A stretch of 64,000 nt of DNA from positions 1 to 64,000 of IMG/VR virus record IMGVR_UViG_3300042923_000281, one strand, 5' to 3'. A model generated the notes under the pieces. That model had not been told where the DNA came from and ran no database searches. It saw nothing but the letters and a program-made list of their open reading frames with translations. Made by a program: the position numbers and the translations under genes. Numbering within the stretch: the first letter of the stretch is position 1; every line of letters starts with the position of its first letter. This document shows, piece by piece, positions 42,983-58,393 of this stretch.

Positions 42983-45373
42983 ATGAGTACTGTCCTTCCA
43001 CAATACCCTTTCGATCCGACGGGTGTCGCGGCAACAAACAAGGTGACCGAGACCCAATCGATTCGTTCGCGGGGTACATTCGATCATTATTTCATCATTC
43101 CGCGCAGCGGTCCGTTCTACGCCACTGGCGTGAAACTGCGACTGTATCCGCAGGGTGCAAACGTCAACAACCCATCGTTGGGTGTCGACCTTCACGAAGG
43201 CGAACACTACAACTTCGGGTATCACTTCGCTTACGCGTCTCATACCATTGGTTTGCCGGTCTACGGCGCCATCACGTTCTACGACCGCAATCTCGAAGGT
43301 CAGCTCCGTATGGAGTACCAGACCCTCGGTGACGATTGGGTACTGGACGATCAGAAGTTCGCTGAGCTTCTGCTTAATGTGGCGTACAACCCGCGCATTG
43401 CAAACTGGGAACAGGTGGTTGAACTGCCTCGTGAATTCCCGGTGGTCAACCATGACTTCAACATTGACGACTTTGTCGGCATGTCGGAAGTGGTTGATGA
43501 GTTGGCGGACATCGAGAAGGCCTTGCTTCAACAAGGCGTCGGCGGTATCGCAGAACACATCGCTGACAAGTCCAACCCTCACGCGGTGACCAAATCGCAA
43601 GTGGGTCTGGCACTGGTGGATAACTTCCCGACTGCTACAGTAGGTGAAGCAACCGCCGCGGTGGCCAATAACCGTTTTATGACGCCTCTGCGAACCAAGC
43701 AGTTGATCGATGCCGTTGCCACTGCTGCGCTCAATGCGCACATGGCCGACATGAACAACCCGCACCAGGTGACCAAGGCGCAAGTCGGTCTGGGGAGTGT
43801 ACAGAACTTTGCCCTGGCCTCTCAGGCTGAAGCTGAAGCCGGTGCCTCGAACGCCCGCTACATGACTCCCCTGCGGACTCGTGAAGCCATCGAAGCCATT
43901 GTCGGTGGAAAGATCGACACGCACATCGCCGACAAGAACAACCCTCATGCCACTACCAAGGCACAGGTTGGCTTGGGCAACGTCGTTAACATTGGTATCG
44001 CAACCAATGCGGCGGCTTTGTCTGGTGCGGACGACTCCGGCATCATTACTCCACGACTGCTGTCGCTGGTGTTGAGTGAAACAGTGGGGTCGGGTGTTAC
44101 TGACCACATCAACAACTTCAACAACCCGCACGGCACCACCAAGTCTCAAGTAGGCTTGGGTAGCGTTGAAAACTTCGGTATTGCCACTCCTGCTGAAGCC
44201 GCTGATGCCACGGCCAACAACAAGTACATGACTCCTCTGGCGGTTCGTCAGGCGATCAATGCCTTGGTGGGTGACAGTTCGAATGCTCACGTCAGTGACT
44301 TCAACAACCCGCACAAGGTGACCGCGGCTCAGGTGGGTACCTACACCGAGCAAGAGATCGATGCGCTGTTGCTGGACAAGCTGGACGTCAACACAGCGGC
44401 GTCTAACGCCCTGAAGGTCTACGGCTTGACGCAGCCTCAGTTGGCAGCGTGGGTCGGTCAGCAGAAGGCAGGTGACTCCCTCCTGTTCGACGGCAAGACC
44501 TACATCGATGTCATGAACACGTTCCTCGCCAGTAAGGTTGCTGACACGTCGAAGTTTGACGGTAAGACCTACGCTGAAGTGAAGCAGGACATGGCAGGCC
44601 AAGTGGCGGGCAGCAAGATCCAATACGCTGTCCCAGAAATGCCACTGTTGATCGACGGCACAGGTAATGAAGTCCCTGCTCCGGTCCACTGGATCTTGCT
44701 GGGTAGCTTCAAGGCTCCAATCAATGGCCTGCATGCAGATCTGACGTTGATGCTGACCGGTGGTCGTAACGACGAATCCCTCAATGCCGATAAGCAACAC
44801 ACGGCGCTGCTGGAGATCGGTGCGACGTACGATCAGGAAGGTGGTGTGGGTGACTTCACTCTGCATCCTCGTGGTGCGGCAGTCAAACACATGTCGGCTG
44901 GTGCGTACCCAATGACCTTGGGCTTTGTGGTGACAGGTACCAACCTGAACTCGAAGATCGATGTCTACCTTAAAGGTGTAGGGCAGCGCAACCCGATCAA
45001 CATCACCGAGCTGTCGGACAAGCTCTGGATTCCGGCTACGTTCCCGGCGTGGGAAGATCTGGCTGACGTCGTCACTGTGGAACCTGCTGGGATTGTGTAT
45101 CCAGCGGTCTTCACGGACGGTACTGCTGACATCGCGGCATTGCAGGCTTTCCAAGCCCGTCGTGATAACCCACACGCGGTAACCAAGGCACAAGTAGGAC
45201 TTGGCTCTACGCCGAACTACGCTGCGGCCACCAACGCCCAGGCGGTTACAGGCACTGCAACGAACCTGTTGATGACTCCTGCTACAACCACCGCCAAAGT
45301 CGATGATTCTATCGGCAAGATGTGCGATGAGTTGATTACGGTCATTGATGCGTCGATGCCGCTGTTCGCTTGA
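42983..45373 (+). CDS. Tail fibre-like protein with NPH repeats
   Basis: YPFDPTG baseplate-anchor N-terminus; six NPHxxTxxQVG repeats. Confidence 0.8.
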   Translation: MSTVLPQYPFDPTGVAATNKVTETQSIRSRGTFDHYFIIPRSGPFYATGVKLRLYPQGANVNNPSLGVDLHEGEHYNFGYHFAYASHTIGLPVYGAITFYDRNLEGQLRMEYQTLGDDWVLDDQKFAELLLNVAYNPRIANWEQVVELPREFPVVNHDFNIDDFVGMSEVVDELADIEKALLQQGVGGIAEHIADKSNPHAVTKSQVGLALVDNFPTATVGEATAAVANNRFMTPLRTKQLIDAVATAALNAHMADMNNPHQVTKAQVGLGSVQNFALASQAEAEAGASNARYMTPLRTREAIEAIVGGKIDTHIADKNNPHATTKAQVGLGNVVNIGIATNAAALSGADDSGIITPRLLSLVLSETVGSGVTDHINNFNNPHGTTKSQVGLGSVENFGIATPAEAADATANNKYMTPLAVRQAINALVGDSSNAHVSDFNNPHKVTAAQVGTYTEQEIDALLLDKLDVNTAASNALKVYGLTQPQLAAWVGQQKAGDSLLFDGKTYIDVMNTFLASKVADTSKFDGKTYAEVKQDMAGQVAGSKIQYAVPEMPLLIDGTGNEVPAPVHWILLGSFKAPINGLHADLTLMLTGGRNDESLNADKQHTALLEIGATYDQEGGVGDFTLHPRGAAVKHMSAGAYPMTLGFVVTGTNLNSKIDVYLKGVGQRNPINITELSDKLWIPATFPAWEDLADVVTVEPAGIVYPAVFTDGTADIAALQAFQARRDNPHAVTKAQVGLGSTPNYAAATNAQAVTGTATNLLMTPATTTAKVDDSIGKMCDELITVIDASMPLFA

Positions 45374-46680
45374 TCTTGAGACACGCTGCGTCTAACGGCG
45401 TAGCGTGTTGTTTTCGAAACTATTCGGATGATGGAGTTTCTCCATGAGTGTACCACCGATTATCCAGTACCCTCTTGACCTAGACGGTACGTCACCGACG
45501 AATAAGATCGTTGGTGAGCGACGGGAGATCAGTACAAACACGGCTCGCGCGTTTGTTCCCAAAGCAGGTCCTTTCTACACCAGCTCGTTTGTCATCATCA
45601 ACGCAGACACCGGTAAGCCACTGGTGCCGGTAGACGACTACGTGTTGGTTCAACCGTTCTCTCAGGCTTCCTTGCGAAGCGGTAAGGACGTGCAGTGTGC
45701 GGTGGTCCTTAAAGTGCAGGCCCCTATCACGGTGATCATGGATTACCAAGTGGTCGGCGGTGAGTACTCGTGGAACCTGTCGGCTCTGGCTGACTTGATC
45801 GCGCAACTGAACCTCGATGACCGTCCTATCAAATGGGGTTCCATCATCGGGCGTCCTACGGCGTATCCACCGGCTCCGCACATCCACGACATCGGCGATA
45901 CCTACGGCTGGGAATACGTGGTGTGGCAATTGGAGCGGATCACCAACGCGATTCTGGTCGGTGATGAAGCGTCTCACGATGAACTGCGTCAACAGATGCA
46001 ATTCATTCGGGATCAACTGCAAGCGAACATCGATGCAGTGGACCTGAAGATCGACAATCACCTGAATGACTTCAACAACCCACACCAGACCACGAAAGCT
46101 CAGGTCGGTTTGTCGTTGGTGGAGAACTATCAGGTTGCGTCGAACGCCGAGGCTCTGGCGGGTACTGTGGGCAACCGTTACATGACCCCAACCTTGGTGG
46201 CGATTCTGGCTAACCGTATCTCTCAGGAGATCACGGACGCTCACGAAGCCAAGAAGAACAACCCTCACGCCGTTACAAAGGCGCAGGTTGGTCTGGGCAG
46301 TGTCGACAACTTTGCCACGGCTACCCAAGCCCAAGCAGAAGCTGGTGCCGCGACTAACGTGTTCATGACACCGCAGCGCACGTACCAGGCGATCATGGTG
46401 TTCGCAGGTAACAAGATCAACCAGCACGTGGCGGACATGAACAACCCGCACAACACCACGAAAGCACAGGTTGGCCTTGGCTTGGTTGACAACTTCCAGA
46501 CTGCCACGGCAGCAGAAGCTCAGCAAGGCATCCTGAACGATCGGTTTATGACCCCTGCTCGTACCAAGGCGGCTATTGATGCCATGGTCGGTAACGTCAT
46601 CAACCAGCACATCTCGAACTTCAACAATCCACACAACACGACCAAAGCGCAAGTGGGGTTGGGGAACATCCCTAACAACA
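43550..46680 (+). repeat. Degenerate ~180-nt coding repeats (NPH..TKAQVGLG) in both fibre genes
   Basis: Recurring AACAACCCGCAC...AAGGCGCAAGTCGGT-like blocks. Confidence 0.8.
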
Positions 46681-46889
46681 TCACGCGTGCTCGTGGGTTG
46701 AACTCCGACGATTACCTGTTGACCGCCGGTGGCATGTTCGATCACGTGAACTCCGCTGACCACGATGCCCGTTACGCTCCGAAGAACGCTGCGGGTGTTG
46801 ACTGCTCGGTGCACTGGAACGGCAACGCCGCCTACATCTGGGGTGGTGGTGCGTGGCGCCAAGTCTGGCCGCCTCTGTGGCAAGACTGA
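45444..46889 (+). CDS. Second tail fibre-like protein with NPH repeats
   Basis: Paralogous YPLDLDG N-terminus, four repeats, Trp-rich end WGGGAWRQVWPPLWQD. Confidence 0.8.
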   Translation: MSVPPIIQYPLDLDGTSPTNKIVGERREISTNTARAFVPKAGPFYTSSFVIINADTGKPLVPVDDYVLVQPFSQASLRSGKDVQCAVVLKVQAPITVIMDYQVVGGEYSWNLSALADLIAQLNLDDRPIKWGSIIGRPTAYPPAPHIHDIGDTYGWEYVVWQLERITNAILVGDEASHDELRQQMQFIRDQLQANIDAVDLKIDNHLNDFNNPHQTTKAQVGLSLVENYQVASNAEALAGTVGNRYMTPTLVAILANRISQEITDAHEAKKNNPHAVTKAQVGLGSVDNFATATQAQAEAGAATNVFMTPQRTYQAIMVFAGNKINQHVADMNNPHNTTKAQVGLGLVDNFQTATAAEAQQGILNDRFMTPARTKAAIDAMVGNVINQHISNFNNPHNTTKAQVGLGNIPNNITRARGLNSDDYLLTAGGMFDHVNSADHDARYAPKNAAGVDCSVHWNGNAAYIWGGGAWRQVWPPLWQD

Positions 46890-46917
46890 TGTAAAACTAC
46901 CGCTTGAGGACTGCATC

Positions 46918-47424
46918 ATGTTTCAACGAATGGAAAACCTGTTCACTGAAATCAGTGAAGAACTGCTGGACCTCGATGTCCTGATGATGAGTCCTCATGT
47001 GTACGAGCAGGGCTTGGTGAAGTTTATCAAGAACGGCGGTAGTCACGATGTTTTCACTATTTCTGATTACCTTGAGATCGACGACTGTCCTGTCAAGGTA
47101 GAAGGCATGGAACGCCTCAACAGAACCATGTGGAACGTCTGTAAACGGTTGGCAGATCACTTCGGCCATGATGGCCCGGTGACCTGTCACCTGTTTATCT
47201 CCCCAAGGGACGGGGTAAGTTTCCCTATGCACACTGACTTGGACGATGTGGTTATCTACATGGTCACAGGACAAAAGACTTTCGAGTCACTGGACGGGTC
47301 GATGGACCTTGTAGCCGGTGACGCTATCTACATCCCGAGAGGTACGGAACACCGTGCCATCAACACTGACAGTTCCTTGATGCTGAGTTTCGGCCTGGAA
47401 CTCTTCACGGAAGCTAAACTGTGA
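46918..47424 (+). CDS. JmjC/cupin (RoxA/NO66-like) 2OG-Fe(II) hydroxylase
   Basis: FPMHTD..D, G-K, L.AGDAIYIPRGTEH; GAGGA RBS. Confidence 0.75.
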   Translation: MFQRMENLFTEISEELLDLDVLMMSPHVYEQGLVKFIKNGGSHDVFTISDYLEIDDCPVKVEGMERLNRTMWNVCKRLADHFGHDGPVTCHLFISPRDGVSFPMHTDLDDVVIYMVTGQKTFESLDGSMDLVAGDAIYIPRGTEHRAINTDSSLMLSFGLELFTEAKL

Positions 47425-48458
47425 ATCAAAAGACCATTTACGTCAAGACCACCGGTACTTGCAACCTGAACTGTCAGCACTGTTTCACCAACGGGAAGAA
47501 CGGGGATAAGACCCACTTCAACCCAGAGGCGACAGTGGCCTGGATCAAAGACTTTATGTCTCGGTATCCGGAAGACACTCATTACCACATCGAATTCCAC
47601 GGCGGGGAGCCTTTCCTTGTGCCGCTGGAGAAGATGAAGATCGTAGCCGATGCGTTCATTGAACAAGAGAACGTGTCCATGTGTGCCAACAGCAACTTGA
47701 CCTTCAAGCTGACTGACGCGCACATCGACTTCATCAAGCATTATTTTGGTGGTTACATTGGGACCAGTTGGGATCATTGGATTCGCTGGAGCAACGAGAA
47801 GCAGGTGAACCTGTGGAAGAGTAATCTTCGGTTGCTGAACTCCCACGACATTGACATTGGTCTCAAGGTGTCTGTCAGTCGTCCTCTTATCGAGACCACG
47901 CCTGATTGGTTCCTCGATCAGATGGAGGCCATTGCGGTGGACGATGTGTCACTGGAGCGTTTGACCCATGACGGCAGTGCTGAGGTCAATCCAGACATCT
48001 TCCCCAACAACGAGGCTCAGGATAACTGGTACCTCGCGCTTTATTTGCGTTACAAAGAACGGAACCCACGCGTAAAGATTCGCACCTTGGACATCATCGA
48101 GCAAAAGCTCAAGATGAAGATGGTGAAGGTCGACACCAACTGCCGTAACTGTGAGCAGAACCTTGTGACCATGAACCCAGACGGGTCGTTGTCCGGTTGC
48201 CCTAACGCAGCCACCAAGCTTCACCATGCCAAGTTAGAACAGGGCGTCGATGCGTTCCTTCAATCCGAATCTCGGGTCGAAGAGATCGTGACTGAATTGA
48301 CGTGGGGTGATACGTGCATTACGTGCGACGTGTTCGATCTATGTGGGGGCGATTGTCATCGACTTCCATGGCAGAAAGGCCGTTGTGGTGGTCTCAAGAA
48401 CACCCTTCGTTTTTTGTCGGGTCGAACTCAACAGTCCAACCTGATTATAAAGGTGTGA
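47421..48458 (+). CDS. Radical SAM/SPASM protein 1
   Basis: CNLNCQHC, FHGGEP; C-terminal CRNC..GC..CITCDVFDLCGGDC..C. Confidence 0.9.
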   Translation: MNQKTIYVKTTGTCNLNCQHCFTNGKNGDKTHFNPEATVAWIKDFMSRYPEDTHYHIEFHGGEPFLVPLEKMKIVADAFIEQENVSMCANSNLTFKLTDAHIDFIKHYFGGYIGTSWDHWIRWSNEKQVNLWKSNLRLLNSHDIDIGLKVSVSRPLIETTPDWFLDQMEAIAVDDVSLERLTHDGSAEVNPDIFPNNEAQDNWYLALYLRYKERNPRVKIRTLDIIEQKLKMKMVKVDTNCRNCEQNLVTMNPDGSLSGCPNAATKLHHAKLEQGVDAFLQSESRVEEIVTELTWGDTCITCDVFDLCGGDCHRLPWQKGRCGGLKNTLRFLSGRTQQSNLIIKV

Positions 48459-48459
48459 T

Positions 48460-48996
48460 ATGGCCGAAGTAATTACTCGGAACCGGATGGCCGTCAATGC
48501 CAACTCCATTCTGAAGAACAACATGAACAGTGGGATCAGTTGGGGTACGAATAACTACCCTGCCAACTCCCTGCCGGGCTGGTTTGCTGGAACGACTGCT
48601 GGGGTGGACTTCACTGCCGTGGCGGGTCACTTCCAAGCCGGTAAGCCCAGTGCGTCTCAGACAGTAGCTGTGCTGCGTAACATCGCTAACACCTTTGGTG
48701 GTGTGCGGACTACGCGGATCGTCATCTACTACAACAACAACGGGAACCTGCAAGTCCAGTACGATGGAACTGCGGTGGCCAACACTATATACGGTGTAGG
48801 TGATTTCGCCTCCCAAGCCAACCTTGCTGGCCTTGGAGTGAATACTCCATTGTCCTTGAACATGTTCAACGCTGCCTGTCAGGCGCTCTGGAACGTGTAC
48901 GTGGCCAACTGCCGGAACCAAGTCCTTACTCTGACCAACACCGTTTGCCACACGAGCTGTCACACCAGTTGCCACTCGTCCCGCGGTCGTCGGTAA
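48460..48996 (+). CDS. Asn/Gly-rich protein with C-terminal (CHxS)3-RGRR tail; candidate substrate of the cluster
   Basis: 178 aa, AAGG RBS, ends VCHTSCHTSCHSSRGRR. Confidence 0.8.
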   Translation: MAEVITRNRMAVNANSILKNNMNSGISWGTNNYPANSLPGWFAGTTAGVDFTAVAGHFQAGKPSASQTVAVLRNIANTFGGVRTTRIVIYYNNNGNLQVQYDGTAVANTIYGVGDFASQANLAGLGVNTPLSLNMFNAACQALWNVYVANCRNQVLTLTNTVCHTSCHTSCHSSRGRR

Positions 48997-49013: not shown

Positions 49014-49823
49014 GTGGATCAGACTACCGAAGTGGAAGTCAAGAAAGAGCCTAACAAGCTACCTGAACCGCGCTTTGCAGCCATCGAAGGCCCGCAGGTT
49101 GTCATCGAGACAACCGTACCTGTACCTATCGCCATCATGCGCCGCAAGTTCAGTGAGAACATCAAGTTCATCGTGGACTACGACAACAGTCGCCACAAGG
49201 GCAAGGTGTTCATCACGTACCTCACCAACTTGAACGTTGAGTGTGAGCTGCGCTTTGGCTCAGTGGAGTCGAAACTGGAGCTGGTGAAAGAGTACCTGCA
49301 CATCACCTCCATGGTCGACCTGCCTCAGCTGGAAGACATCGTGATCAACCTGTTGCTGGCAGCGACGGGCAAGCCGTACCACTTGGACTTCAATCCTCTG
49401 GACTTCATTCTGGAGAACGAAGCGATCCTTCAGGTATGGATGCGTAACTGCTGCATGATCCCGACGTACGCCTTGCACAGTTACCCGCCGACTGAAGAGT
49501 TGGTAAAGAACTACGAAGAGATCCCAGGCGAAGACCTGACCGGTATCAACTTCGTGCACTTGGCCAGCCACCTGATGTTCCCGATGCTGATTTCCGACGT
49601 CCCTGAAGAGCACTGGTGCTGGAACAAGACGTTCTTCAAAGAGTACTGCTTCGGTGGTCACAACCTGTTCTACTACACGCAGTCGGAGAACAACCCGTTC
49701 TTCATGGCGTTGCTGGTGGTCAGTGAGCCGGAAGCAGTGGGTGATCTGGGGATTGCAGCGGCCACTATCCTGCAAGAAAACCACACTTACCTAAAGGGCC
49801 TCGAACATGTACCATCTGCTTAA
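49014..49823 (+). CDS. Hypothetical protein (rSAM cluster)
   Basis: AAGGAG RBS before GTG at 49014; 269 aa. Confidence 0.7.
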   Translation: MDQTTEVEVKKEPNKLPEPRFAAIEGPQVVIETTVPVPIAIMRRKFSENIKFIVDYDNSRHKGKVFITYLTNLNVECELRFGSVESKLELVKEYLHITSMVDLPQLEDIVINLLLAATGKPYHLDFNPLDFILENEAILQVWMRNCCMIPTYALHSYPPTEELVKNYEEIPGEDLTGINFVHLASHLMFPMLISDVPEEHWCWNKTFFKEYCFGGHNLFYYTQSENNPFFMALLVVSEPEAVGDLGIAAATILQENHTYLKGLEHVPSA

Positions 49824-50862
49824 CCAGACGTACGTCGATACTGAAACACGGATCGACCGTACGGCCAATACGATCACCATCTCCCCGCAGGTGGGCTTCG
49901 AGTACATCCCTCAGGCCAATGAGAAGGTCGGCACCCATTTGGGTTACGGCACCAGTCTCGATGCGTTCACGCCTGAGCAGTTCCTCGACCTCATGATTGC
50001 CGCGCGTGATCTGGAAGAGAAGGTCGTCATCTACACTGATGGTAAGACCTACGCTCGCATGTACGCCATGTTGATCAAAGCGGTGTTTCCAAGCATCGAC
50101 TTCGAGAACTTCCGCTGGTTCATGCTCTGCAAGAAGGCCACCTTCAACTCGATCATCGTAGCCATGGGTGAACCCCGTGTTGACGTGCTCTCGAGTGTGG
50201 TCATCAACACAGCGCTGTGCCAAGAGCTGTTCGATAAGGAAGAGGCTCTGCAAGAGGTCTTCAACGAACTGGTGGCAGAAGACGCCGATGCACTGTCGCT
50301 GGAATGGCACATTGCTCGACTGCGTACCGAAGACATTGCGGGAAAGATCCCTAAGGCAACCAAGACCATCCTGCGTCGTATCGCTCTGTCGAACGCCCAT
50401 GATGCCATGGATGTCTGGGCACGTCACTTGACCCGTCCTGAGTTCTGGGACATGGCCGGTGCTGACATGGAAACGTTGCTCAATGCACCGTCCGTGTTTG
50501 AAGGCTGCTTGGGTCTGCCTCACCTGGCCTCTCAGCAGTTGCTGCGTCCTGGCCTGTACGACTTCCGTCCGAACGATACGTGGATCAAAGGCATGCTGCG
50601 TGAAGCAGTGGACCTGATGCACCGTCTGGAAGACGACTCGTCGGCTGACCGTGCGGCTGAGATCCTGCGCTTGCTGGAAGACGACCGGAACATGGTAGAG
50701 GCAGCTAACTGCCTTGATCGTGTCAACCGGATGTTCAACGGCGAGATGCGGATTGCGTTGGCCATGCGTGACACAGGCAAGTACGACGAGAACCTCATTC
50801 GTCACATCCTGAACATGGAGCTGTCGAGCCTCAAGGCAGCTTTGGAAGGAGCGGCCTGGTAA
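49807..50862 (+). CDS. Hypothetical protein (rSAM cluster)
   Basis: 351-aa ORF overlapping both neighbours. Confidence 0.75.
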   Translation: MYHLLNQTYVDTETRIDRTANTITISPQVGFEYIPQANEKVGTHLGYGTSLDAFTPEQFLDLMIAARDLEEKVVIYTDGKTYARMYAMLIKAVFPSIDFENFRWFMLCKKATFNSIIVAMGEPRVDVLSSVVINTALCQELFDKEEALQEVFNELVAEDADALSLEWHIARLRTEDIAGKIPKATKTILRRIALSNAHDAMDVWARHLTRPEFWDMAGADMETLLNAPSVFEGCLGLPHLASQQLLRPGLYDFRPNDTWIKGMLREAVDLMHRLEDDSSADRAAEILRLLEDDRNMVEAANCLDRVNRMFNGEMRIALAMRDTGKYDENLIRHILNMELSSLKAALEGAAW

Positions 50863-51857
50863 TGGAACTGATCCCTGTAGTGAACATACTCAGGGAGAAG
50901 AAGGGTCGCCGTAAGGAGGCCCATCTGATCCTGTTCGAATGGTGCAACCTGCGGTGTTCCTTTTGCCATCAGGACCATGATTCCAAAGTGGGCTTCGATG
51001 CAGTTGACATGATCCGGAAAGCACAGACACTGATTGATTCGGTGGACAGTGAATCCGAGATCGTGATCAACATCACCGGCGGTGAACTGTTCATGGACGA
51101 TGTACCGGACTGGATGTTCGGCTACTACCTGACGATTGGCAAGATGCTGCTCGAGAACTTCCCTCATGCCAAACTGGTCTGGGGGACGAACTTGATCTTC
51201 AAGGACGTCTGGCGGGTAGCGCGGTTGATCCACATGCTGAGACCGTATGGCAAAGTCGTTCTGGCTACATCGTACGATCCGGCTGGCCGTTTCAATGAGA
51301 TGCAACGAGTCCGCTTCTTCGAGGTGCTTGAGGAAGTGGCTCCGTTGGTTGAAACTGTCAACGTGGTGATTACCAAGCAGAACATCGAATCGTTCCTTGC
51401 GGGGCGTGAAGGTCGTGAGGTGGCTTGGCTCTGTGAACAGTTCGACGTGTACTTCGACCACTACATCCCTAGCCAGATGTACGAGTACATTCAGCCGGAT
51501 GAAGAGCTCATCAGTGCGCTCTACCTGCACCTCAACAAGAAGTACCCCAACTCCTACCCGATCAAGGACTGGAAGGCTAACGTGATCAATGAGACCACGT
51601 GCCGCTCCACCAAGATCATCAACAAGGACGGCGTTGTCAGTACTTGTTGGTCTGAGGCGGGCAAGGGTGCGATCTTGGATGAGGCTGAAGGTCTGCGGGC
51701 TAAGGATGAAGCAGAGATTGCGTTCGTGGAACATTACGACTGCTTCTCCTGCGAGTACTACACCCGGTGTGGCTTGCGGTGCTTCCTCCATGACACTGTC
51801 TTGGGTGAGAAGTCCAAGGTGTGCAGCATCAAGACCATGTTCAAAGCAATTCTGTGA
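50862..51857 (+). CDS. Radical SAM protein 2
   Basis: CNLRCSFC, ITGGELF; C-terminal C..C..CFSCEYYTRCGLRC..C. Confidence 0.9.
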   Translation: MELIPVVNILREKKGRRKEAHLILFEWCNLRCSFCHQDHDSKVGFDAVDMIRKAQTLIDSVDSESEIVINITGGELFMDDVPDWMFGYYLTIGKMLLENFPHAKLVWGTNLIFKDVWRVARLIHMLRPYGKVVLATSYDPAGRFNEMQRVRFFEVLEEVAPLVETVNVVITKQNIESFLAGREGREVAWLCEQFDVYFDHYIPSQMYEYIQPDEELISALYLHLNKKYPNSYPIKDWKANVINETTCRSTKIINKDGVVSTCWSEAGKGAILDEAEGLRAKDEAEIAFVEHYDCFSCEYYTRCGLRCFLHDTVLGEKSKVCSIKTMFKAIL

Positions 51858-51994: not shown

Positions 51995-52207
51995 ATGACC
52001 GATTCCATCTTGCCAATACGTCGCCGTACGCCACTCGTGCCTCGTATCTCCCGTAAACTGGGCGATGATGCGTGGCTTCGTGAGAAGCTCAAAGAAGCGC
52101 AGTGTCCAGAAGCAGAGCAACGCCGACGTGACTACCTCGGTCAATGGACCGCCCAGCCTGCTGATAAGGAAACGCCCGATGGACCTGATCGTCAAGCCGA
52201 CCGTTAA
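51995..52207 (+). CDS. 70-aa small protein
   Basis: GGAGG RBS; overlaps the start of rSAM 3. Confidence 0.55.
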   Translation: MTDSILPIRRRTPLVPRISRKLGDDAWLREKLKEAQCPEAEQRRRDYLGQWTAQPADKETPDGPDRQADR

Positions 52208-53267
52208 ATGTAACTTCAAGTGCACGTTCTGCTCGAGCACCCACCTCTCTGAAGATCCGAAAGAGATCGTAGAGCTGGAACAGATCGAGCGGTTCGTGCA
52301 ACGCTTCAATGTGAACACCATCATCGTCAACGGCGGTGATCCTCTGATGATGCCTCCTGAGTACTACTGGAGCCTCATCGAGATCCTAGACCGTAACGAC
52401 AGCGATGCGTCGATCAGCTTCACGTCCAACCTGTGGCCGTTCTACGTCAAGCCAGAGAAGTGGGAAGAACTGTTCAAGCATGAGCGCATGGGTGTCACGA
52501 CCTCCTTTCAGTACGGCGACAAGCGTCTGAAGGGCGATGGCAGTGTCTTTACCCAAGAAGACTTCCAGAAGGTCTCAGACCTCTTCCTGGAGCGCATTGG
52601 GTATCGTCCAGAGTTCATTGCGGTCATTGATCGGGACAACGAGCACACCGTGCTGGATACCGTGCGCCTAGCTAAGGAGATGGGCGTGGTGGCTAAGGTC
52701 AACTACGTCATGGGTTCAGGTCCTGAAGTGGTCCGGGGTGGCATCACCATCGGTGGACAGAACCAGTTCTTCACGCAGGCGGACATGTACGGTCACTACA
52801 TCGAGATCTACGACGCGGGTCTCATGGAGTGGGAAAGCAACACCAAGCAGATGGCCAAGCGACTTCAGCACAAGCACACCACGTGTCCACTGGCCCGTAA
52901 CTGTGATGAAGGTATCCGCACTCTGCAACCGGGTGGTGGGTACTTTTCCTGCGGTGCCTTTGCTGATGACGGCGCGTACCCGATTGACTTCGAGAAGGAG
53001 ATGACGACTGACGTGATAGCGTTGCCTCTGCGTTACGAAGCCGATCTGGATTCCATGAAGGAGTCGTGCTACACCTGCCCTATGTTTTCCATCTGCAATG
53101 GCTGCCGTAAGACCGTGGCTGACACCAAGCGGTTTGGGCTGGTTGAACACCACTGTCGCAAGATGAAAAGCCAAGCTGCCAAGATCATCGAAATCAATGG
53201 CATGTCCGCTCACCTAGAGCCGACGCCGTATGAAGACGAATCACTTCCTTTGATTGCGCGAGGTTAA
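52179..53267 (+). CDS. Radical SAM/SPASM protein 3
   Basis: MDLIVKPTVKCNFKCTFC, NGGDP; CPLARNC..C..CYTCPMFSICNGC..C. Confidence 0.9.
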   Translation: MDLIVKPTVKCNFKCTFCSSTHLSEDPKEIVELEQIERFVQRFNVNTIIVNGGDPLMMPPEYYWSLIEILDRNDSDASISFTSNLWPFYVKPEKWEELFKHERMGVTTSFQYGDKRLKGDGSVFTQEDFQKVSDLFLERIGYRPEFIAVIDRDNEHTVLDTVRLAKEMGVVAKVNYVMGSGPEVVRGGITIGGQNQFFTQADMYGHYIEIYDAGLMEWESNTKQMAKRLQHKHTTCPLARNCDEGIRTLQPGGGYFSCGAFADDGAYPIDFEKEMTTDVIALPLRYEADLDSMKESCYTCPMFSICNGCRKTVADTKRFGLVEHHCRKMKSQAAKIIEINGMSAHLEPTPYEDESLPLIARG

Positions 53268-53268
53268 C

Positions 53269-53484
53269 ATGTCCGTCCCTATCCTGGATCAAATGGCGTT
53301 CTTCCCACCCGGTCATGAACTCAAGCTTCAGATCCCTGAGGTCTTGAAGAAGATCGTGCTCAAGCGCTGTGTCGAAAGCGTTGACGACTTCCTCGACGTC
53401 GTGAGCGATTCCCGGGGTATTAAACTGAGCCCTTACCAGCGAGATTTCTACAAATGCCTAAGTCAAGAATCAACGTCTCGCTGA
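53269..53484 (+). CDS. 71-aa small protein
   Basis: GAGG RBS; fills the gap between rSAM 3 and rSAM 4. Confidence 0.55.
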   Translation: MSVPILDQMAFFPPGHELKLQIPEVLKKIVLKRCVESVDDFLDVVSDSRGIKLSPYQRDFYKCLSQESTSR

Positions 53485-54386
53485 ACCCGTGGTACTACTG
53501 CAACTTTCGGTGTGACTTCTGTTACCTCACTGAGCAGCAGTTAAGCGACAAGCGATTCATTCCGCTGGACGTCTTTGAACAACGCATTGATGAACTGCTG
53601 GAGCACTTTGAGATTGGCCACATCGACATCTACGGTGGGGAAGTCTTCCTGTTGCCTCAGCAGTACTTGATGGACATCAAAGACATTCTGCACATGCGAG
53701 GGATTGATGACATCGTCGTCGTGACCAACCTGTCGCACGTACCGGACATCGTCCACGACCCGGCATTTGACATCTCGGTGTCGTATGACTTCGGGGCGCG
53801 TGAGAAGCACGATCAGGTGTTGCAGAACATCTTCCAGCTCAGCAACAAGTTCAACATCCTGACGTTGGCAGGCCGTACGTTCTTGGATCTGGTGACTCCT
53901 GACGAGTACGTACAGACCATGAACGGGTTCCCACATCTGAAAGGCTGTGAGATCAAACCGTACAGTGCCAACCAAGCCAACGATCAGGACATCTCGTTCA
54001 AGGAGTTTGAGGAGTTCGTCTGGGCAGTCATCACCCACCCAGAGCGTAAGTTCTATTTCGAGAACGAGACTCAGGTCAAGGAAGCCGTAGAAGGCAGTCG
54101 TAATGCTTTCTCTGATGACCACATCTACATCACTCCGACTGGCGATTTCGCTGTACTGGAGTTTGACAAGGATGATCGTGAGTTCTTCCTGACCGTTGAT
54201 GGGGTTGAAGGTTACCTCAACTGGTGCGGACAAGAGTATGAGCGAGTAGCGGACAATCCGTTCTGTGCATCGTGTACGTTCCACGGCGGGTGTCTGTCTG
54301 AGCACTTGCGGGAAGTCACAACCCTTGAGAACTCCTGCAATGGGTTCAAGGGTCTCTTGTTAAAGTGGGTGGAGCATGGATCTTGA
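53454..54386 (+). CDS. Radical SAM protein 4
   Basis: CNFRCDFC, YGGEV; C-terminal CASCTFHGGCLSEH..C. Confidence 0.9.
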   Translation: MPKSRINVSLNPWYYCNFRCDFCYLTEQQLSDKRFIPLDVFEQRIDELLEHFEIGHIDIYGGEVFLLPQQYLMDIKDILHMRGIDDIVVVTNLSHVPDIVHDPAFDISVSYDFGAREKHDQVLQNIFQLSNKFNILTLAGRTFLDLVTPDEYVQTMNGFPHLKGCEIKPYSANQANDQDISFKEFEEFVWAVITHPERKFYFENETQVKEAVEGSRNAFSDDHIYITPTGDFAVLEFDKDDREFFLTVDGVEGYLNWCGQEYERVADNPFCASCTFHGGCLSEHLREVTTLENSCNGFKGLLLKWVEHGS

Positions 54387-55413
54387 ATTTGTAGAGCACC
54401 GGCAGCGGTTGGAAATCACCCTCGACATCTTTCGGGGGTGCCAACACCATTGTTCAGGGTGCATGATCGATAAGCAGTTGGGTGGGGACGTTGATGACAT
54501 TCCTCAACTGGCTGCTATGATCAAGGAAATGATGGAGGCTGGGTACGTGGCCTTTGACATGGGGATCGGTCCTACCGACTACATGTCCTCGGACAACACC
54601 AGCGACGTCATGAGTCATCCTGTCTTCCAAGAGATGGCGCAATGGTTCCATCAAGTGACGTTCAACGCAGCGTTCCTTGAGAAGGACATGGACAAGTACA
54701 AGGTGATGTGTGAGGAGATCGATGCCTCCATCCCCGGTAAGGCTGTCCGCTTCCTGATGCCGGCTGCTCCGCACTTCTTCAAGAGCGACAAGTTCGGCAA
54801 CATGATCACCGAGAAGCTTGAGTTCGTCAAAGAGCACCTGAAGGTCGCTTACTTGAACGAAGCGGGCTTTGTGGTCAACTGCACACACGAGACTGTGGGT
54901 GAGGATTTCGATGACTTGATGAAGAATGGGTTCGCTGTGGATTTCCCAGTGGACAAGGACGACATCTTGAACATCCCGTATGGTCGTCTCAAGGTCAAAG
55001 ACCTGATGACTGCTCAGCGGATCACCCGCATGTCTCACCGGATCACGCAGTTCTACTCAGGCCTCAATGGGACTGATGAGCGTCGTCGTAATCCTGACCT
55101 CTGTTACCACACCGGAACGATGGTCAATCTGCTGTACACCGGCGGTAAGCTGTATTGGGTGCCTTTTCTTAAAGACGACTGTCCGTTCCTTGAGGACGAG
55201 TTCGTCGTTCCTCGCCCCTGGTCTATGGATAACCTTCTGAACACCCGTCAGAAGGCCATGGAGCGCGCTATGGAGTATCTTAAAGACACTCCGTGCATGA
55301 GTTGCGTCTACATGAGTAGTTGTAGCGAAAAGGGGATCATCAATATCATGGAACGGATGCAGATCCGTGAATGCCTCGTGGGGTTGCAGTATGTCGACAA
55401 TGATTCAGAGTAG
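54376..55413 (+). CDS. Divergent radical SAM-like protein 5
   Basis: CQHHCSGC, no GGE motif; C-terminal CMSCVYMSSC..C. Confidence 0.7.
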   Translation: MDLEFVEHRQRLEITLDIFRGCQHHCSGCMIDKQLGGDVDDIPQLAAMIKEMMEAGYVAFDMGIGPTDYMSSDNTSDVMSHPVFQEMAQWFHQVTFNAAFLEKDMDKYKVMCEEIDASIPGKAVRFLMPAAPHFFKSDKFGNMITEKLEFVKEHLKVAYLNEAGFVVNCTHETVGEDFDDLMKNGFAVDFPVDKDDILNIPYGRLKVKDLMTAQRITRMSHRITQFYSGLNGTDERRRNPDLCYHTGTMVNLLYTGGKLYWVPFLKDDCPFLEDEFVVPRPWSMDNLLNTRQKAMERAMEYLKDTPCMSCVYMSSCSEKGIINIMERMQIRECLVGLQYVDNDSE

Positions 55414-56416
55414 AGCGTTCAACCTGACGCTTGAGATTCTACAAGGCTGTAAGTTCCAATGCGTCGGCTGTATGGTGGACAAGGACTTCGATCCCGGTCC
55501 CTTCAATAAAGACCGGCGTGAGCTGCTGGACATGGTCGATGACATGAAGGCTGCGGGCTATCGCCTGCGTGAATTCACCATCGGGCCTGTAGATGTGATC
55601 GCCTCCAAGGCCGGGGTGGACATCCTTGACCACCCGTTGATCTTCCAGTTGGCTCAGCGTTACGATTCGATGGTGTTGCCGCTGGCTCTGTTGACGGACG
55701 ACGGACTGGAGGAGCTGTGTGAGAAGGTCAACTTCCTGATGAAAGGGAAGTCCTTCACGATTGCCACCCCGTTCCCACTCAAGAGCACGTACAACCCCAA
55801 GCACCAAGAGCTGATCAACCGTCGTGTGCAGTACGTCATTGACCACCTGCCTGATGTGAAGTTCGAACTGCTCTACCTGACCGTGAACATGACCGGTGAC
55901 TCCATTGACCAGTTCAGTGTCGAGACCAATCAGGCCATTCATGAGTTGGACTTCGGGGTGAAACGGCTGGTGGAGTACGTGTTCCCTCATGTACGCAAAG
56001 GGTTCGATGACCTGATGAACCGTTCTGCCTTCCTGAGGGCTTTTGGGAAGTTCTGTGACGTGATTCACGCATGTAAGGACACAGAGTTCACCCGGTACCT
56101 GATCAAGCCTCTGGCGGACTCTCTGGAGGCCACGTATCGTTCGGGCAAGTTGTACTACACACCGACCTTGATCGAGAAGTTCCCGATCTTCCATCATGAC
56201 TTTGTCGTGCCGAAGCCATGGTGCAACGCAACCATCGAGCAGTTCGAGGAAGATCAGTACATGGAGCAGTTGGTCAACAACAGCAACAACCAACCGTGCA
56301 GCGATTGCATGCACTTGGACCGTTGTGCTCGCGGTGATGTTCAAGCCATCATGGCACACCTGTGCAGCACTGACTGCCTCGTCGACATGAAAAACCGTTG
56401 GGATGTGCCTGTATGA
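55391..56416 (+). CDS. Divergent radical SAM-like protein 6 (paralog of 5)
   Basis: CKFQCVGC; C-terminal CSDCMHLDRC..C. Confidence 0.7.
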   Translation: MSTMIQSRAFNLTLEILQGCKFQCVGCMVDKDFDPGPFNKDRRELLDMVDDMKAAGYRLREFTIGPVDVIASKAGVDILDHPLIFQLAQRYDSMVLPLALLTDDGLEELCEKVNFLMKGKSFTIATPFPLKSTYNPKHQELINRRVQYVIDHLPDVKFELLYLTVNMTGDSIDQFSVETNQAIHELDFGVKRLVEYVFPHVRKGFDDLMNRSAFLRAFGKFCDVIHACKDTEFTRYLIKPLADSLEATYRSGKLYYTPTLIEKFPIFHHDFVVPKPWCNATIEQFEEDQYMEQLVNNSNNQPCSDCMHLDRCARGDVQAIMAHLCSTDCLVDMKNRWDVPV

Positions 56417-56859
56417 TCAATGATAAATGGTGGGTCGATAAACGTTACAAGGTGGAGATCCCTGAGTGGCTTTTGGAACAGGCGTTCTGTGAAGTCAACA
56501 AGGAGTACATCGAAACTGAAACAGTTGTTGACTGGGCGCTGGAGAACATCCTGCCATTTGCTCAGAAGATGATGAGCACCCAAGACATCACAATCTGTGC
56601 CAACCATTTCCACATGGGAACGGCTGGCCTTACCCCTCATGACCACTTGCCTCATGCGTTCACGTCGATCCTGTATCTGACAGACGCTGAAGGTGAGCTG
56701 GTCATCCATCTACCGGACGGAAAGTTCATGCACGTCACACCAGAAGCAGGGTTGCTGGTTACGTTCCCTGCCCACCTGGTGCATCACGTCGAACAGTCCC
56801 CTTTTGACGAGCTTCGTGTCTCGTTGGCGAGCAACTATGAATTCACAACACCCGTATAA
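56413..56859 (+). CDS. 2OG-Fe(II) oxygenase
   Basis: PHDH, ILYL, FPAHLVHHV, RVS. Confidence 0.8.
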   Translation: MINDKWWVDKRYKVEIPEWLLEQAFCEVNKEYIETETVVDWALENILPFAQKMMSTQDITICANHFHMGTAGLTPHDHLPHAFTSILYLTDAEGELVIHLPDGKFMHVTPEAGLLVTFPAHLVHHVEQSPFDELRVSLASNYEFTTPV

Positions 56860-57271
56860 AGACTATCAGCGCCTCTACAACGAGATGGTGACTGATCACC
56901 CCGACGCATTTGCCAACATGGAGATCGTCGAATCCGAAGAGCTGGTGGACAACGCGTTGCATTACTTCCGTGAAGCGACGTTCCCGTTGTACTACCCGGC
57001 CAAGTCGTACTCGGTCGCGATCATCTACGCGTTCAAGCTGTTTGAACTCTACGGGATCGGGATCTACGACGCCTTGCGTGACGAAGACCTGTTCTTGGGT
57101 CAAGACCCTTTCTTCGTGCCGTACGACGAAGACCCAGACACCTACGACGCTATCCTGATTGGGTTGCAACAGATCCCGAACTGGATCGAGTCGGGCTGGG
57201 CACCGCAGACCGTCAAGTACTTCATGCTCGAGTGCACGGAGGAAGGGGTTCAATCCGTCCTTGGAGGTTAA
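56837..57271 (+). CDS. Acidic hypothetical protein
   Basis: 144 aa from MNSQHPY; overlaps the upstream gene. Confidence 0.7.
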   Translation: MNSQHPYKDYQRLYNEMVTDHPDAFANMEIVESEELVDNALHYFREATFPLYYPAKSYSVAIIYAFKLFELYGIGIYDALRDEDLFLGQDPFFVPYDEDPDTYDAILIGLQQIPNWIESGWAPQTVKYFMLECTEEGVQSVLGG

Positions 57272-57272
57272 C

Positions 57273-57830
57273 GTGGAAATCATCCAGCCCTGGAAAACCG
57301 AAATCGCTCGCATCAACGTCAGGGATCAGTTCGACATGGAGGCCTTTTCCAACGAGGTCTTCATGATGTACTCCATGACGCAAGGGGAAGCCAACTCGCA
57401 GGAGAAGATCAACGCTGAGAACTTCCCTGTCACGATGGACATGCGGGACAACCTCATCACCCCTCTGATTCAGAAGTTTGCCAAGCGCTGCTTCGACACG
57501 ACCTTGGACGACTTCTACGTCGAGACCAATGGCAAGTGGATAGAACCGGGTGAAGGCCTGTTCCCGCACTACCATCCAGGCTCTGTGGTATCCGCGATCT
57601 GCTACCCGTGTGACTCGAACAATGGCATGACCATGTTTGACCCACGGGGCAATGCGTGTCGCGGATACCCAAAACCTATGCGACAAGCCCACTTTGGCAA
57701 TTTCACGATCTCGCCACGGGCAGGGGACATCTTCATCTTCCCCAGCTATATCCAACACAGTGTCCCTCATGTGACGGAGGACATCAGACTGTCCCTGCTA
57801 CATGAGTACTACGTCACTCGAAACTTATAG
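57273..57830 (+). CDS. 2OG-Fe(II) oxygenase (TIGR02466-like)
   Basis: GGAGG RBS before GTG; PHYHP, FDPRG, FPSYIQHSV, RLS. Confidence 0.8.
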   Translation: MEIIQPWKTEIARINVRDQFDMEAFSNEVFMMYSMTQGEANSQEKINAENFPVTMDMRDNLITPLIQKFAKRCFDTTLDDFYVETNGKWIEPGEGLFPHYHPGSVVSAICYPCDSNNGMTMFDPRGNACRGYPKPMRQAHFGNFTISPRAGDIFIFPSYIQHSVPHVTEDIRLSLLHEYYVTRNL

Positions 57831-57841
57831 AAGGCTCGATA

Positions 57842-58393
57842 ATGAACATCATCCAACCTTGGAAGATCGAGATCGCCCAAATCAACCTGCTGGATAAGGT
57901 TGATAACGACGAACTCGCCAACGAGATTCACATGCTTCATTGCTTGTGTCCTCGTAGCAGCCAAACACCTCTGGACGTGACGCCTGAGCAGTTCCCTGCA
58001 TTGGCTCACTTCCGTGATGAGATCCTGCGTCCGATTGCTGAAGAATACATCCGTCGCTGCTTCGGTGTTGATCCGAAAGAGATCACCATCGACACCTTTG
58101 GCAAGTCGTTCGAGAACGGTGAATCCCTGGGGTCTCACCTGCATGGCAACAGCTGCCTGACCAGTGTGTACTACCCGGAAGATTCGAAAGCCGGTATGTC
58201 ACTGGTCGATCCTCGCTTCAATGCCTCGCGTGGTTATCCGCGTGCTGTGCGTGACACTCACTTCGGTGAGCATTACGTAGCGCCGAAGGCTGGTGACCTG
58301 TGGCTGATGCCAAGTTACATCCAACACAGCGTTGAAGCCAACCCGGCTGACATGCGTCTGTCCCTCATCAACGACTTCCACTTCAAGGCGTAA
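57842..58393 (+). CDS. 2OG-Fe(II) oxygenase (TIGR02466-like), tandem paralog
   Basis: HLH, DPR, PSYIQHSV, RLSL. Confidence 0.8.
   Translation: MNIIQPWKIEIAQINLLDKVDNDELANEIHMLHCLCPRSSQTPLDVTPEQFPALAHFRDEILRPIAEEYIRRCFGVDPKEITIDTFGKSFENGESLGSHLHGNSCLTSVYYPEDSKAGMSLVDPRFNASRGYPRAVRDTHFGEHYVAPKAGDLWLMPSYIQHSVEANPADMRLSLINDFHFKA

Follow-up and report, generated by a model that had tools for sequence, protein, structure and literature searches.

What function can be assigned to a small phage protein that ends in a Cys-His repeat and is encoded directly behind a radical-SAM gene? The question is raised by an ORF at positions 48460-48996 (+) of a 64,000-nucleotide stretch of IMG/VR virus record IMGVR_UViG_3300042923_000281, which is referred to below as the window. 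The ORF encodes a protein of 178 aa ending in VCHTSCHTSCHSSRGRR. A preliminary description, made from the sequence alone, regarded it as a candidate substrate with a ranthipeptide/SCIFF-like C-terminal core, a folded-protein precursor whose tail is stapled or hydroxylated, and named a Cys/His metal site and a non-canonical CX3CH heme-type motif as alternatives. The observation itself was confirmed in every detail that was checked, whereas the interpretation placed on it was supported only in part.

Conservation of the C-terminal tail

The ORF translates without stops to 178 aa and ends in LTNTVCHTSCHTSCHSSRGRR followed by the stop codon. Its five Cys lie at residues 140, 151, 163, 167 and 171, all within the last 39 aa, and the last three are spaced at i/i+4/i+8. 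The protein contains 24 Asn, 21 Ala and 16 Gly but only 4 Asp plus Glu, and its pI is 9.55. The tail itself, residues 163-178 (48946..48993, +), reads CHTS-CHTS-CHSS-RGRR, that is, three C-H-x-S/N units plus an R-G-R-R cap. The three units are encoded by tgc cac acg agc, tgt cac acc agt and tgc cac tcg tcc. The pattern CH..CH..CH occurs once in the six-frame translation of the whole window.

The target is a member of a large family that is almost confined to phages, with 87 homologues found by a word-indexed search and 692 clusters found by an HMM search. All 227 family members fetched carry the CH repeats, and 211 of them end in the canonical tail. Part of this collection was seeded by the tail itself, and the statement that the tail is always present is therefore firm only for the strong HMM hits. 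In a logo of 277 distinct canonical tails, the first unit was C100 H100 x S95/N5, the second C100 H100 x S62/N36, the third C100 H99 x S69/A21/N10, and the cap R100 G83 R100 R100. Only the three tail Cys are conserved; Cys140 and Cys151, which the preliminary description had counted together with them, are not.

The tail is strongly selected at the protein level. Identity in the body falls to about 30% (mean 31% to ten distant loci), while in 70 distinct tail DNAs the Cys, His, Ser-4 and Arg codons are scrambled between synonymous codons, including AGY versus TCN for Ser and AGR versus CGN for Arg, to the point of saturation, and the amino acids stay invariant. The repeat is also a modular unit, as its copy number runs from 2 to about 16, with blocks separated by NVPV. 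Other rSAM substrates, such as CrpA and the HxS repeats of HxsA, are likewise repeated motifs.

Searches of the target against family databases gave little. No Pfam or NCBIfam family was found (for NCBIfam, no hit at E<=0.1), and PHROGs returned only phrog_35144, of unknown function. Searches with distant members by tblastn against cultured phages found only DT01, or nothing; cultured carriers were found through rSAM3, a neighboring gene described below.

Gene cassette

The target sits in a fixed cassette that follows tail-fibre genes and occupies about 10 kb. Two tail-fibre-like genes of 796 aa and 481 aa (42983..46889, +) precede it, with matches to phrog_2163, phrog_13857 and tail-fibre PHROGs at E values down to 1e-133. 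A large fibre-like ORF, with a median length of 521 aa, precedes the cassette in most loci. The preliminary description noted that the target resembles the neighboring fibres in composition, but profile–profile comparison of the target with the 481-aa fibre showed no relationship, and the similarity is therefore not homology. The same comparison with hypA, the gene immediately downstream, also showed none.

The first cassette gene (46765..47424, +) encodes a cupin/JmjC-type Fe(II) oxygenase (PF08007, E=1.2e-8; PF07883, E=3e-8). Its true start is probably near 46918, by comparison with the 168-aa homologue in phage DT01. It was present in 49 of 50 loci with full flanks and is replaced by a 2OG oxygenase in L031, the locus of a variant discussed below. 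The second gene, rSAM1 (47421..48458, +), ends one base before the ATG of the target and encodes a radical-SAM/SPASM enzyme with no N-terminal RRE. It contains CX3CX2C at residues 14-21 (C14, C18 and C21) and eight further invariant Cys at 241, 244, 260, 299, 302, 308, 312 and 322, including CX2CX5CX3C at 299-312, and the SPASM model TIGR04085 scores 27.6 bits against a cut-off of 27. These features identify rSAM1 as a genuine SPASM enzyme of the peptide/protein-modifying group.

Two proteins of unknown function are encoded downstream of the target. The gene hypA (49014..49823, +) has a GTG start after an AAGGAG ribosome-binding site, matches phrog_20767, and lies immediately downstream of the target in 81 of 83 loci. 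Its AF2 model has a pLDDT of 90, and no PDB match was found by fold (Foldseek) or by sequence profile. The gene hypB (49807..50862, +) is weakly conserved in sequence and was detected in at least 31 of 50 loci; it had no Pfam match, and its profile search of PDB sequences returned only noise. Pfam scans of every member of the hypA and hypB alignments gave only scattered chance hits. Neither protein has an invariant Cys, and the target is the only protein in the neighborhood with an invariant Cys-containing linear motif.

Several rSAM paralogues follow. The SPASM-type rSAM2 (50862..51857, +) carries CX3CX2C at residue 28 and CX2CX5CX3C at 294-307, and was present in 49 of 50 loci, being absent from L031. 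The rSAM3 gene (52065..53267, +) is the most conserved of the cassette, with a mean identity of 56% to ten distant loci against 31% for the target body, and it shows weak full-length matches to DynA and anSME. The rSAM4 gene (53454..54386, +; PF04055, E=2e-8) was present in 49 of 50 loci. Two extra paralogues, rSAM5 (54376-55413) and rSAM6 (55367-56416), together spanning 54376..56416 (+), both carry the CX3CX2C motif and were detected in 21 of the 50 full-flank loci, among them the jumbo-phage loci closest to the window. The region 56398..58393 (+) contains three 2OG-Fe(II) oxygenase genes (56398-56859, 57159-57830 and 57842-58393), recognized by PF13759 hits, and a conserved small protein (56693/56837-57271) present in 44 of 50 loci.

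The preliminary description had proposed that homologues lacking the CHxS tail or rSAM neighbors would count against its reading. This was examined and did not refute it, as the homologues keep the tail and an rSAM gene lies within 120 nt upstream of the target in 75 of 79 loci. In the 50 loci with full flanks, rSAM1, rSAM3 and hypA were each present in 50.

Predicted structure and probable virion association

The AF2 model of the target has a mean pLDDT of 89 and a pTM of 0.82. Residues 1-163 are confidently predicted to form an alpha/beta body, while confidence falls to 70 and then 51 over the last two 10-residue blocks, which hold the tail, suggesting that the tail is flexible. A Foldseek search found nothing significant in the PDB, and a profile search of PDB sequences also found nothing, so the predicted fold appears to be novel. 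These results support the view that the protein is a folded protein and not a short peptide. They also bear on covalent c-type heme attachment. The tail does contain two overlapping C-x3-C-H strings, but they share the middle Cys, the N-terminus shows by inspection no hydrophobic signal peptide, and residues 7-22 are a helix of the predicted fold. Heme c attachment is periplasmic, and the Ser/Asn and RxRR conservation would be left unexplained. This reading is very improbable.

Association with the virion is indicated by a single homologue. In purified virions of Agrobacterium phage Atu_ph07, the homologue gp170 was identified by 8 peptides with 35% coverage, whereas gp165, gp168, gp169 (the hypA homologue), gp171 and gp172 are absent from the list, and the cassette enzymes were not found. 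The gp170 protein peaked in the top gel slice after heating at 95 C in SDS, despite a molecular weight of 31.9 kDa (checked as 31.89 kDa). However, this high position is shared by ordinary fibre proteins, and the sample was not reduced, so SDS-stable trimers or disulfides would explain it. It has also to be considered that the rSAM enzymes install inter-chain cross-links that covalently lock a trimer or tie the protein to a fibre subunit, which would fit the gel position and the trimer implied by the S74 variant described below. This possibility is unlikely, as disulfides suffice and known SPASM cross-links, as in the CrpA, QhpC and triceptide precedents, are intramolecular.

Variants of the family strengthen the connection to fibres. 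Some are fused to a Gly-rich fibre domain, and one (protein P0198 of locus L031) carries a Peptidase_S74 intramolecular chaperone after the repeats (PF13884, 44.8 bits against a cut-off of 22). This domain marks trimeric fibre or spike C-termini and implies a trimer; it is absent from the window protein.

The S74 variant adds some weight to the main rival, a structural metal site, because it places the array where trimeric fibre stems sit. In this reading, the protein trimerizes, the Cys and His of the C-H-x-S units from the three chains coordinate Zn or Fe ions along the axis in an arrangement that would resemble the HxH iron sites in the needle of the T4 long tail fibre tip, no covalent modification is made, and the rSAM and oxygenase products act on other substrates such as the fibre repeats. 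Invariant Cys and His are a classic metal-ligand pair, the homologue migrates with oligomeric fibre proteins, and the expanded arrays look metallothionein-like. However, metal ligation alone does not explain the 95% Ser at position 4, S/N only at position 8, or the invariant RxRR, nor does it explain the translational coupling to a SPASM enzyme, and NVPV-interrupted arrays of 2-3 units do not suggest one continuous axial stack. A metal site is therefore considered the less likely reading, although it is the strongest of the alternatives.

Proposed maturation of the tail

The best reading, with a probability of about 0.55, is that the gene encodes a fibre-associated virion protein of about 19 kDa whose C-terminal C-H-x-S/N units are cross-linked by the neighboring SPASM enzymes. 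By homology with gp170, the protein is probably a virion component of a jumbo phage, in which a globular alpha/beta body would present a flexible array capped by R-G-R-R. In this view, rSAM1, translationally coupled to the target, is the most likely first modifier, rSAM3 would also take part, and rSAM2 and rSAM4 may be involved too. Each enzyme would abstract a hydrogen from a residue within a unit and close a small ring, costing 2 Da per ring. Two chemistries fit. First, a thioether could link the Cys sulfur to the alpha or beta carbon of the Ser/Asn three residues on, a C-x-x-acceptor ring as in CrpA. Second, His-C2 could be joined to the beta carbon of Ser/Asn in a three-residue cyclophane, as in triceptides. 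The Fe(II) oxygenases may add hydroxylations. The product would be a rigid, basic C-terminal tip, resistant to reduction and proteolysis, on a probably trimeric fibre-associated protein.

The analysis established the motif with its conservation and copy-number variation, the synteny, the SPASM features, the fold prediction, the presence of one homologue in virions, and the S74 and Gly-rich fusions. That the tail is modified at all, which enzyme acts on it, the type of bond, the formation of a trimer and a role at the fibre tip are inferences, with no experimental mass or alkylation data for any family member behind them. Besides the selection on the tail, its modular nature, the synteny and the absence of another candidate substrate nearby, the reading rests on the SPASM features of rSAM1, whose nearest solved relatives are anSME, CteB and ChlB, on the fit of the unit to known substrate motifs, on the match between the best-conserved enzyme (rSAM3) and the best-conserved peptide, on the presence of the gp170 homologue but not of the enzymes in Atu_ph07 virions, and on the fibre context. 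On the other hand, the enzymes could instead act on the adjacent fibre proteins, and the chemistry cannot be read from homology, as the rSAM scores are far below every curated family cut-off. A third possibility, that the C-terminal peptide is modified and then cut off to give a cofactor or metallophore, as with PqqA or MftA, would fit a conserved C-terminal core beside several rSAM enzymes and oxygenases. This is very unlikely, because no peptidase was recognized in the cassette, the protein is found in virions (those of Atu_ph07), the body is a conserved 160-aa fold, and arrays of up to 16 units are hard to reconcile with a single cofactor.

Radical-SAM cross-linking is known for small peptides and for a handful of cellular proteins (QhpC, CrpA, HxsA), but no phage structural protein is known to be matured in this way. 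Authors of several isolate papers have noted the rSAM genes as an unexplained oddity; literature searches for jumbo phages with rSAM genes together with JmjC or RiPP found no description of the system, and a search for the motif strings returned only unrelated words. It is about as likely as not that this family, of about 700 protein clusters at 50% identity, is the first class of phage virion proteins matured by RiPP-type radical-SAM chemistry. The distal C-terminal tip would then be built from 2-16 enzymatically cyclised C-H-x-S units, made by a dedicated cassette of 2-6 SPASM enzymes plus Fe(II) oxygenases that is widespread in phiKZ-like and other jumbo myoviruses and in many uncultured phages. 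If the tail is modified, it would define a new substrate class and probably new enzyme specificities, would explain why these phages carry so many Fe-S enzymes, and would point to a chemically reinforced or chemically novel host-contact structure.

Comparison with known systems

Membership of SCIFF or the ranthipeptides, as suggested in the preliminary description, is not supported. Like SCIFF/CteB and PapA/PapB, the target has a period-4 Cys motif with Thr/Ser in between and a SPASM partner, and the CteB (SCIFF maturase) structure 5wgg is among the best PDB matches to the rSAM1 profile. However, the protein has 178 aa and not about 45, and no NCBIfam model for SCIFF, HxsA or any other precursor matches it. 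No ScfB hit was obtained for rSAM1 among the 25 best families, and the only related hit was "not_ScfB", at 16.9 bits against 855, for rSAM4. The PapB model (NF047865) gives 44.6 bits against a cut-off of 340, and there is no CX3D motif, as Asp is absent at +4.

CrpA/CrpC of Methanococcus voltae (PMC13692751) provides a system in which a whole protein, not a short peptide, carries a repeated C-terminal Cys motif and is encoded next to a SPASM rSAM that makes thioethers, in that case protein ranthionine cross-links. The C-x-x-(S/N) of the target resembles the C-X-X-Q/D thioether motif of CrpA. There is no sequence relationship. CrpC has an RRE and CrpA a leader-like N-terminus, whereas rSAM1 has no RRE; the window protein is viral, its acceptors would be Ser/Asn, its His is invariant, and four to six rSAM paralogues are present. 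In QhpC/QhpD, three Cys of a small protein (the quinohemoprotein amine dehydrogenase gamma subunit) are cross-linked by one SPASM rSAM, but the acceptors there are Asp/Glu, the target has no dehydrogenase context, and rSAM1 scores 23.8 bits against 453 for the QhpD model (TIGR03906).

Triceptides (PMC11499958) are three-residue cyclophanes, with HaaB acting on HAA, HtkB on HTK and YhhB on HNR, and their precursors often carry several motifs. The three H-x-(S/N/A) strings of the target fit the aromatic-X2-X3 motif. YhhB is the top NCBIfam hit of rSAM1, and the triceptide synthase ChlB is among its PDB hits, but the scores place rSAM1 outside the characterized 3-CyFE families (YhhB 51 bits against 445, AmcB 42 against 425, FxsB 39 against 370). 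Triceptide motifs need no Cys, and those substrates are short peptides.

In the HXS antiphage system (PMC13128918), HxsA, a protein rich in basic residues with tandem His-x-Ser repeats, is matured by two rSAM enzymes, HxsB and HxsC, and its last repeat (SHRSS) is covalently modified. That system is bacterial and defensive, and HxsA has a peptidoglycan-binding domain and no invariant Cys. Three H-x-S strings are present in the target, but the HxsA model gives no hit, HxsB scores 28.3 bits against 370, HxsC 20.8-24.1 bits against 268, and HxsD gives no hit.

The anaerobic sulfatase-maturating enzyme (anSME) is the only solved SPASM enzyme that aligns with rSAM1 over its full length. It lacks an RRE and acts on a protein, at the C/S-x-P/A-x-R formylglycine site of sulfatases, and the last unit of the target, C-H-x-x-R, has an invariant Arg at +4. 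However, position +2 is S33/G30/C16 and only A3, the anSME model (TIGR03942) scores 38 bits against 349, and there is no sulfatase. Finally, trimeric phage fibre tips with Peptidase_S74 chaperones or HxH metal sites share with the target family a position in the fibre module, the S74 domain of one variant and, in Atu_ph07, presence in virions, but the predicted body of the target is globular and matches no fibre fold, and the repeat is C-H-x-S, not HxH.

Gene and Its Source

The open reading frame at 48460-48996 on the plus strand is intact and encodes 178 codons ending in NTVCHTSCHTSCHSSRGRR. Its cysteine residues lie at positions 140, 151, 163, 167, and 171, and the codons of the three C-terminal units differ synonymously. 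The protein is rich in Asn, Ala, and Gly, contains four acidic residues, and has a pI of 9.55. The preceding gene, rSAM1 (47421-48458), ends one base before the ATG. The string CH..CH..CH occurs only once in the six-frame translation of the 64-kb window. The preliminary description had drawn attention to several of these features, including the synonymous differences between the repeat codons, and every detail that it gave was found to be correct.

The window corresponds to bases 1-64000 of the 277-kb IMG/VR contig UViG_3300042923_000281. Its nearest cultured relative is the Pseudomonas jumbo phage pPa_SNUABM_DT01, in which the whole region is syntenic and the homologue is annotated as a hypothetical protein. 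The DT01 homologue is 57% identical overall, and in the tail it differs at a single residue (S to A at position 12 of the tail).

Distribution of the Family

A word-indexed search found 87 homologues of 108-193 aa, all but one of them 174-193 aa, down to about 30% identity. An unindexed HMM search of 1.8 billion representatives found 692 clusters at E<1e-3, and 148 relatives lie on viral contigs. A pattern scan of one genome for each of 185,579 bacterial and archaeal species found two. One is a 4-kb contig, and the other is a 92-kb contig of a metagenome bin on which the gene follows a 1979-aa ORF with repeated motifs that is taken to be a fibre. Both appear to be phage DNA.

Cultured carriers include DT01, Ralstonia phages RSL2 and RSF1, Burkholderia phages FLC6, FLC8, and SURPRISE13, Agrobacterium phage Atu_ph07, and Sinorhizobium phage Phosso. 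In the lineages that were read, the tails are CHSSCHTSCHGSRGRR (RSL2 and FLC6), CHSSCHASCHNSRSRR (Atu_ph07), and CHTSCHASCHSSRSRR (Phosso). No Pfam or NCBIfam model matches the protein, and its only label is phrog_35144, of unknown function.

Conservation of the Cys-His Tail

The sequence logo of the tail was derived from 277 distinct canonical tails. The residue before the first unit is V or I. In the first unit, Cys and His are each 100% conserved and are followed by a variable residue and S (95%) or N (5%). In the second unit, Cys and His are again each 100% conserved, and the fourth position is S (62%) or N (36%). In the third unit, Cys is 100% and His 99% conserved, and the fourth position is S (69%), A (21%), or N (10%). 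The cap consists of R (100%), G (83%), R (100%), and R (100%). The other two cysteines of the window protein are not conserved.

In 70 distinct tail DNAs, TGT and TGC, as well as CAT and CAC, are each used about equally, the Ser at tail position 4 uses both AGY and TCN codons, and Arg uses both AGR and CGN codons, while the amino acids never change. These results indicate strong protein-level selection. All 227 family members that were retrieved carry CH repeats. However, the word-indexed search, the collection of relatives on viral contigs, and the pattern scan were partly seeded by the tail itself. Universality of the tail is therefore firm only for the strong hits of the HMM search, and tail-less remote homologues cannot be excluded.

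The unit is modular. Some members have two units and some have four, and three lineages have 13-16 units in blocks separated by NVPV (the relatives' loci L024 and L032, and the family member P0091). Such expanded arrays, with blocks separated by NVPV or NVV instead of three units, are found at L024:9992-10675, L032:10001-10705, and L085:3-362 as well as in P0091, and the rSAM gene set of these members is the same as in relatives with three units.

Predicted Structure of the Body

An AF2 model based on a 66-sequence alignment gave a mean pLDDT of 89 and a pTM of 0.82. The predicted secondary structure is H7-22, E26-29, H65-77, E82-93, E96-109, H133-152, and E156-163. Confidence falls to 70 and then 51 over the last two 10-residue blocks, which hold the tail. 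A Foldseek search found no match in the PDB. In BFVD, it found the DT01 and Atu_ph07 homologues, one uncultured-phage protein, and three larger proteins of one uncultured myovirus whose tails could not be read. These results suggested a folded protein of novel predicted fold with a flexible C-terminal peptide.

Organization of the Gene Cassette

Across about 80 loci, the gene order is fibre gene(s), cupin/JmjC oxygenase, rSAM1, the gene for the Cys-His tail protein, hypA, (hypB), rSAM2, rSAM3, rSAM4, a small conserved protein, and then 2OG oxygenase(s). rSAM1 lies within 120 nt upstream in 75 of 79 loci, and hypA lies directly downstream in 81 of 83 loci. Among the 50 loci with full 10-kb flanks, rSAM1, hypA, and rSAM3 are each present in 50, the cupin gene, rSAM2, and rSAM4 in 49 each, the small conserved protein in 44, and rSAM5 and rSAM6 in 21 each. 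The longest-ORF starts of the cupin gene and of the small conserved gene (46765-46917 and 56693-56836, respectively) overlap upstream genes and are not supported by the DT01 annotation, and the likely true starts are near 46918 and 56837.

All six rSAM genes of the window have CX3CX2C and C-terminal CX2CX5C-type motifs. rSAM1 has eight further invariant cysteines, which make up a full SPASM set, and starts directly with the rSAM core, so that it has no RRE. It reaches the SPASM domain cut-off but no family cut-off. The rSAM1 profile matches anSME over its full length, and also matches CteB (SCIFF maturase), ChlB (cyclophane synthase), YydG, and MoaA. rSAM3 (52065-53267, plus strand) is far better conserved than any other cassette gene. 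It averages 56% identity to ten distant loci, compared to 31% for the body of the Cys-His tail protein, and gives a tblastn E of about 1e-120 to Atu_ph07, which implies a very constrained substrate. hypA (AF2 pLDDT 90) and hypB match nothing known.

The cassette seems to tolerate mobile or accessory insertions at fixed junctions. Insertions of about 1.5-2.3 kb lie between rSAM2 and rSAM3 in several relatives (L006:13398-14860, L008:13386-15646, L020:13342-14913, L022:13389-15009; L087:12941-14090; L089:2052-2960). In RSL2 and FLC6, genes annotated as dihydrofolate reductase occupy that position, and in FLC6 a GIY-YIG nuclease lies between the fibre and cupin genes.

Probable Association with Fibres and Virions

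Several lines of evidence support a probable role of the protein as a fibre-associated virion component. First, the gene follows tail-fibre genes in the window, and it does so in distant loci whose upstream ORFs carry tail-fibre C-terminal domains. The metagenome-bin contig, from Rhodobacteraceae (L086:121-6879), carries two tandem short copies of 137 and 134 aa, each with the full tail, directly after the 1979-aa fibre-like ORF, which has repeated PIFYDSNDTxYYxDP motifs. On this contig, rSAM1 lies 5 kb away in a rearranged cassette.

Second, two family members are fused to other domains. P0161 has an N-terminal Gly_rich_2 fibre domain, while P0198 (L031:10001-10948) has the body, four CHxS units, a GD-rich linker, and a Peptidase_S74 intramolecular chaperone, with PF13884 at 44.8 bits against a cut-off of 22. 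The Peptidase_S74 domain drives trimerisation of fibre and spike C-termini and is then cleaved off. The CHxS array would therefore again be the mature C-terminal tip, and the protein is probably a trimer. This variant ends in the chaperone and lacks RGRR, and its cassette (L031:8268-13861) is reduced to a 2OG oxygenase, rSAM1, the variant gene itself, hypA, hypB, and rSAM3, with no rSAM2 or rSAM4. These observations suggested that rSAM1 and rSAM3 are the partners tied to the CHxS units, and that rSAM2 and rSAM4 may relate to the RxRR cap or to other substrates, although this is an inference from a single locus.

Third, in the published ESI-MS/MS study of purified Atu_ph07 particles, the homologue gp170 gave 8 unique peptides and 35% coverage in gel slices 1-9 and was most abundant in slice 1. 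Its identity was confirmed as a protein of 296 aa and 31.89 kDa. Proteins of about 32 kDa normally peak in slices 7-8, while annotated tail fibres peak in slices 1-2. Because the loading buffer contained no reductant, the high position of gp170 shows an oligomer or adduct but not its nature. The cassette enzymes gp165, gp168, gp171, and gp172, and the hypA protein gp169, are not in the published list. The 4449-aa gp180 (Atu_ph07 locus L088:1-2025), annotated as a virion structural protein and encoded a few genes upstream of the cassette, is also absent from this list, while the small gp170 is present.

Possible Mechanisms and Comparison with Other Systems

The most economical reading is that each C-H-x-(S/N) unit is a modification module for the SPASM enzymes, and two known chemistries fit the spacing. 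First, a Cys thioether could be formed to the residue at +3. CrpA of M. voltae, a 28.8-kDa protein, is cross-linked in C-X-X-acceptor motifs by the SPASM enzyme CrpC. Second, a His-C2 to C-beta three-residue cyclophane could be formed, as HaaB acts on HAA, HtkB on HTK, and YhhB on HNR. The bacterial HXS defence system, in which a protein with HxS repeats is matured by two rSAM enzymes, provides a further precedent. The conserved Ser/Asn, which a pure metal site would not require, favours covalent chemistry. However, the invariant Cys plus His and the probable trimeric context keep a metal site alive as the main rival. The conservation of the tail, the order of the cassette, the SPASM features of rSAM1, the domain fusions, and the presence of gp170 in Atu_ph07 particles were established by the analysis or from published data, whereas modification of the tail, its chemistry, the enzymes responsible, and the trimer are inferred.

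Compared to described systems, the protein and its neighbours fall outside each one that was examined, namely SCIFF, PapB, HxsA, QhpD, anSME, and the characterised triceptide synthases. It would therefore work like an rSAM-matured protein without belonging to a described family. The interpretation in the preliminary description, in which the tail of a folded precursor with a SCIFF-like core is modified, is only partly supported. Papers on the isolates only remark on the odd abundance of rSAM genes, and no description of the system was found in the literature. While rSAM-modified proteins are already known, the setting in the phage virion would be new.

The fibre-like proteins encoded upstream of the cassette (42983-46889, plus strand) may also be considered as substrates. 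Both carry 4-6 copies of a motif of about 60 aa, [D/N]xNNPHxxTKAQVGLGxVxN...A..A..G....[YF]MTP, which is not recognised by Pfam. Its invariant Asn, Pro, His, and Lys would be plausible targets for the JmjC/2OG oxygenases of the cassette.
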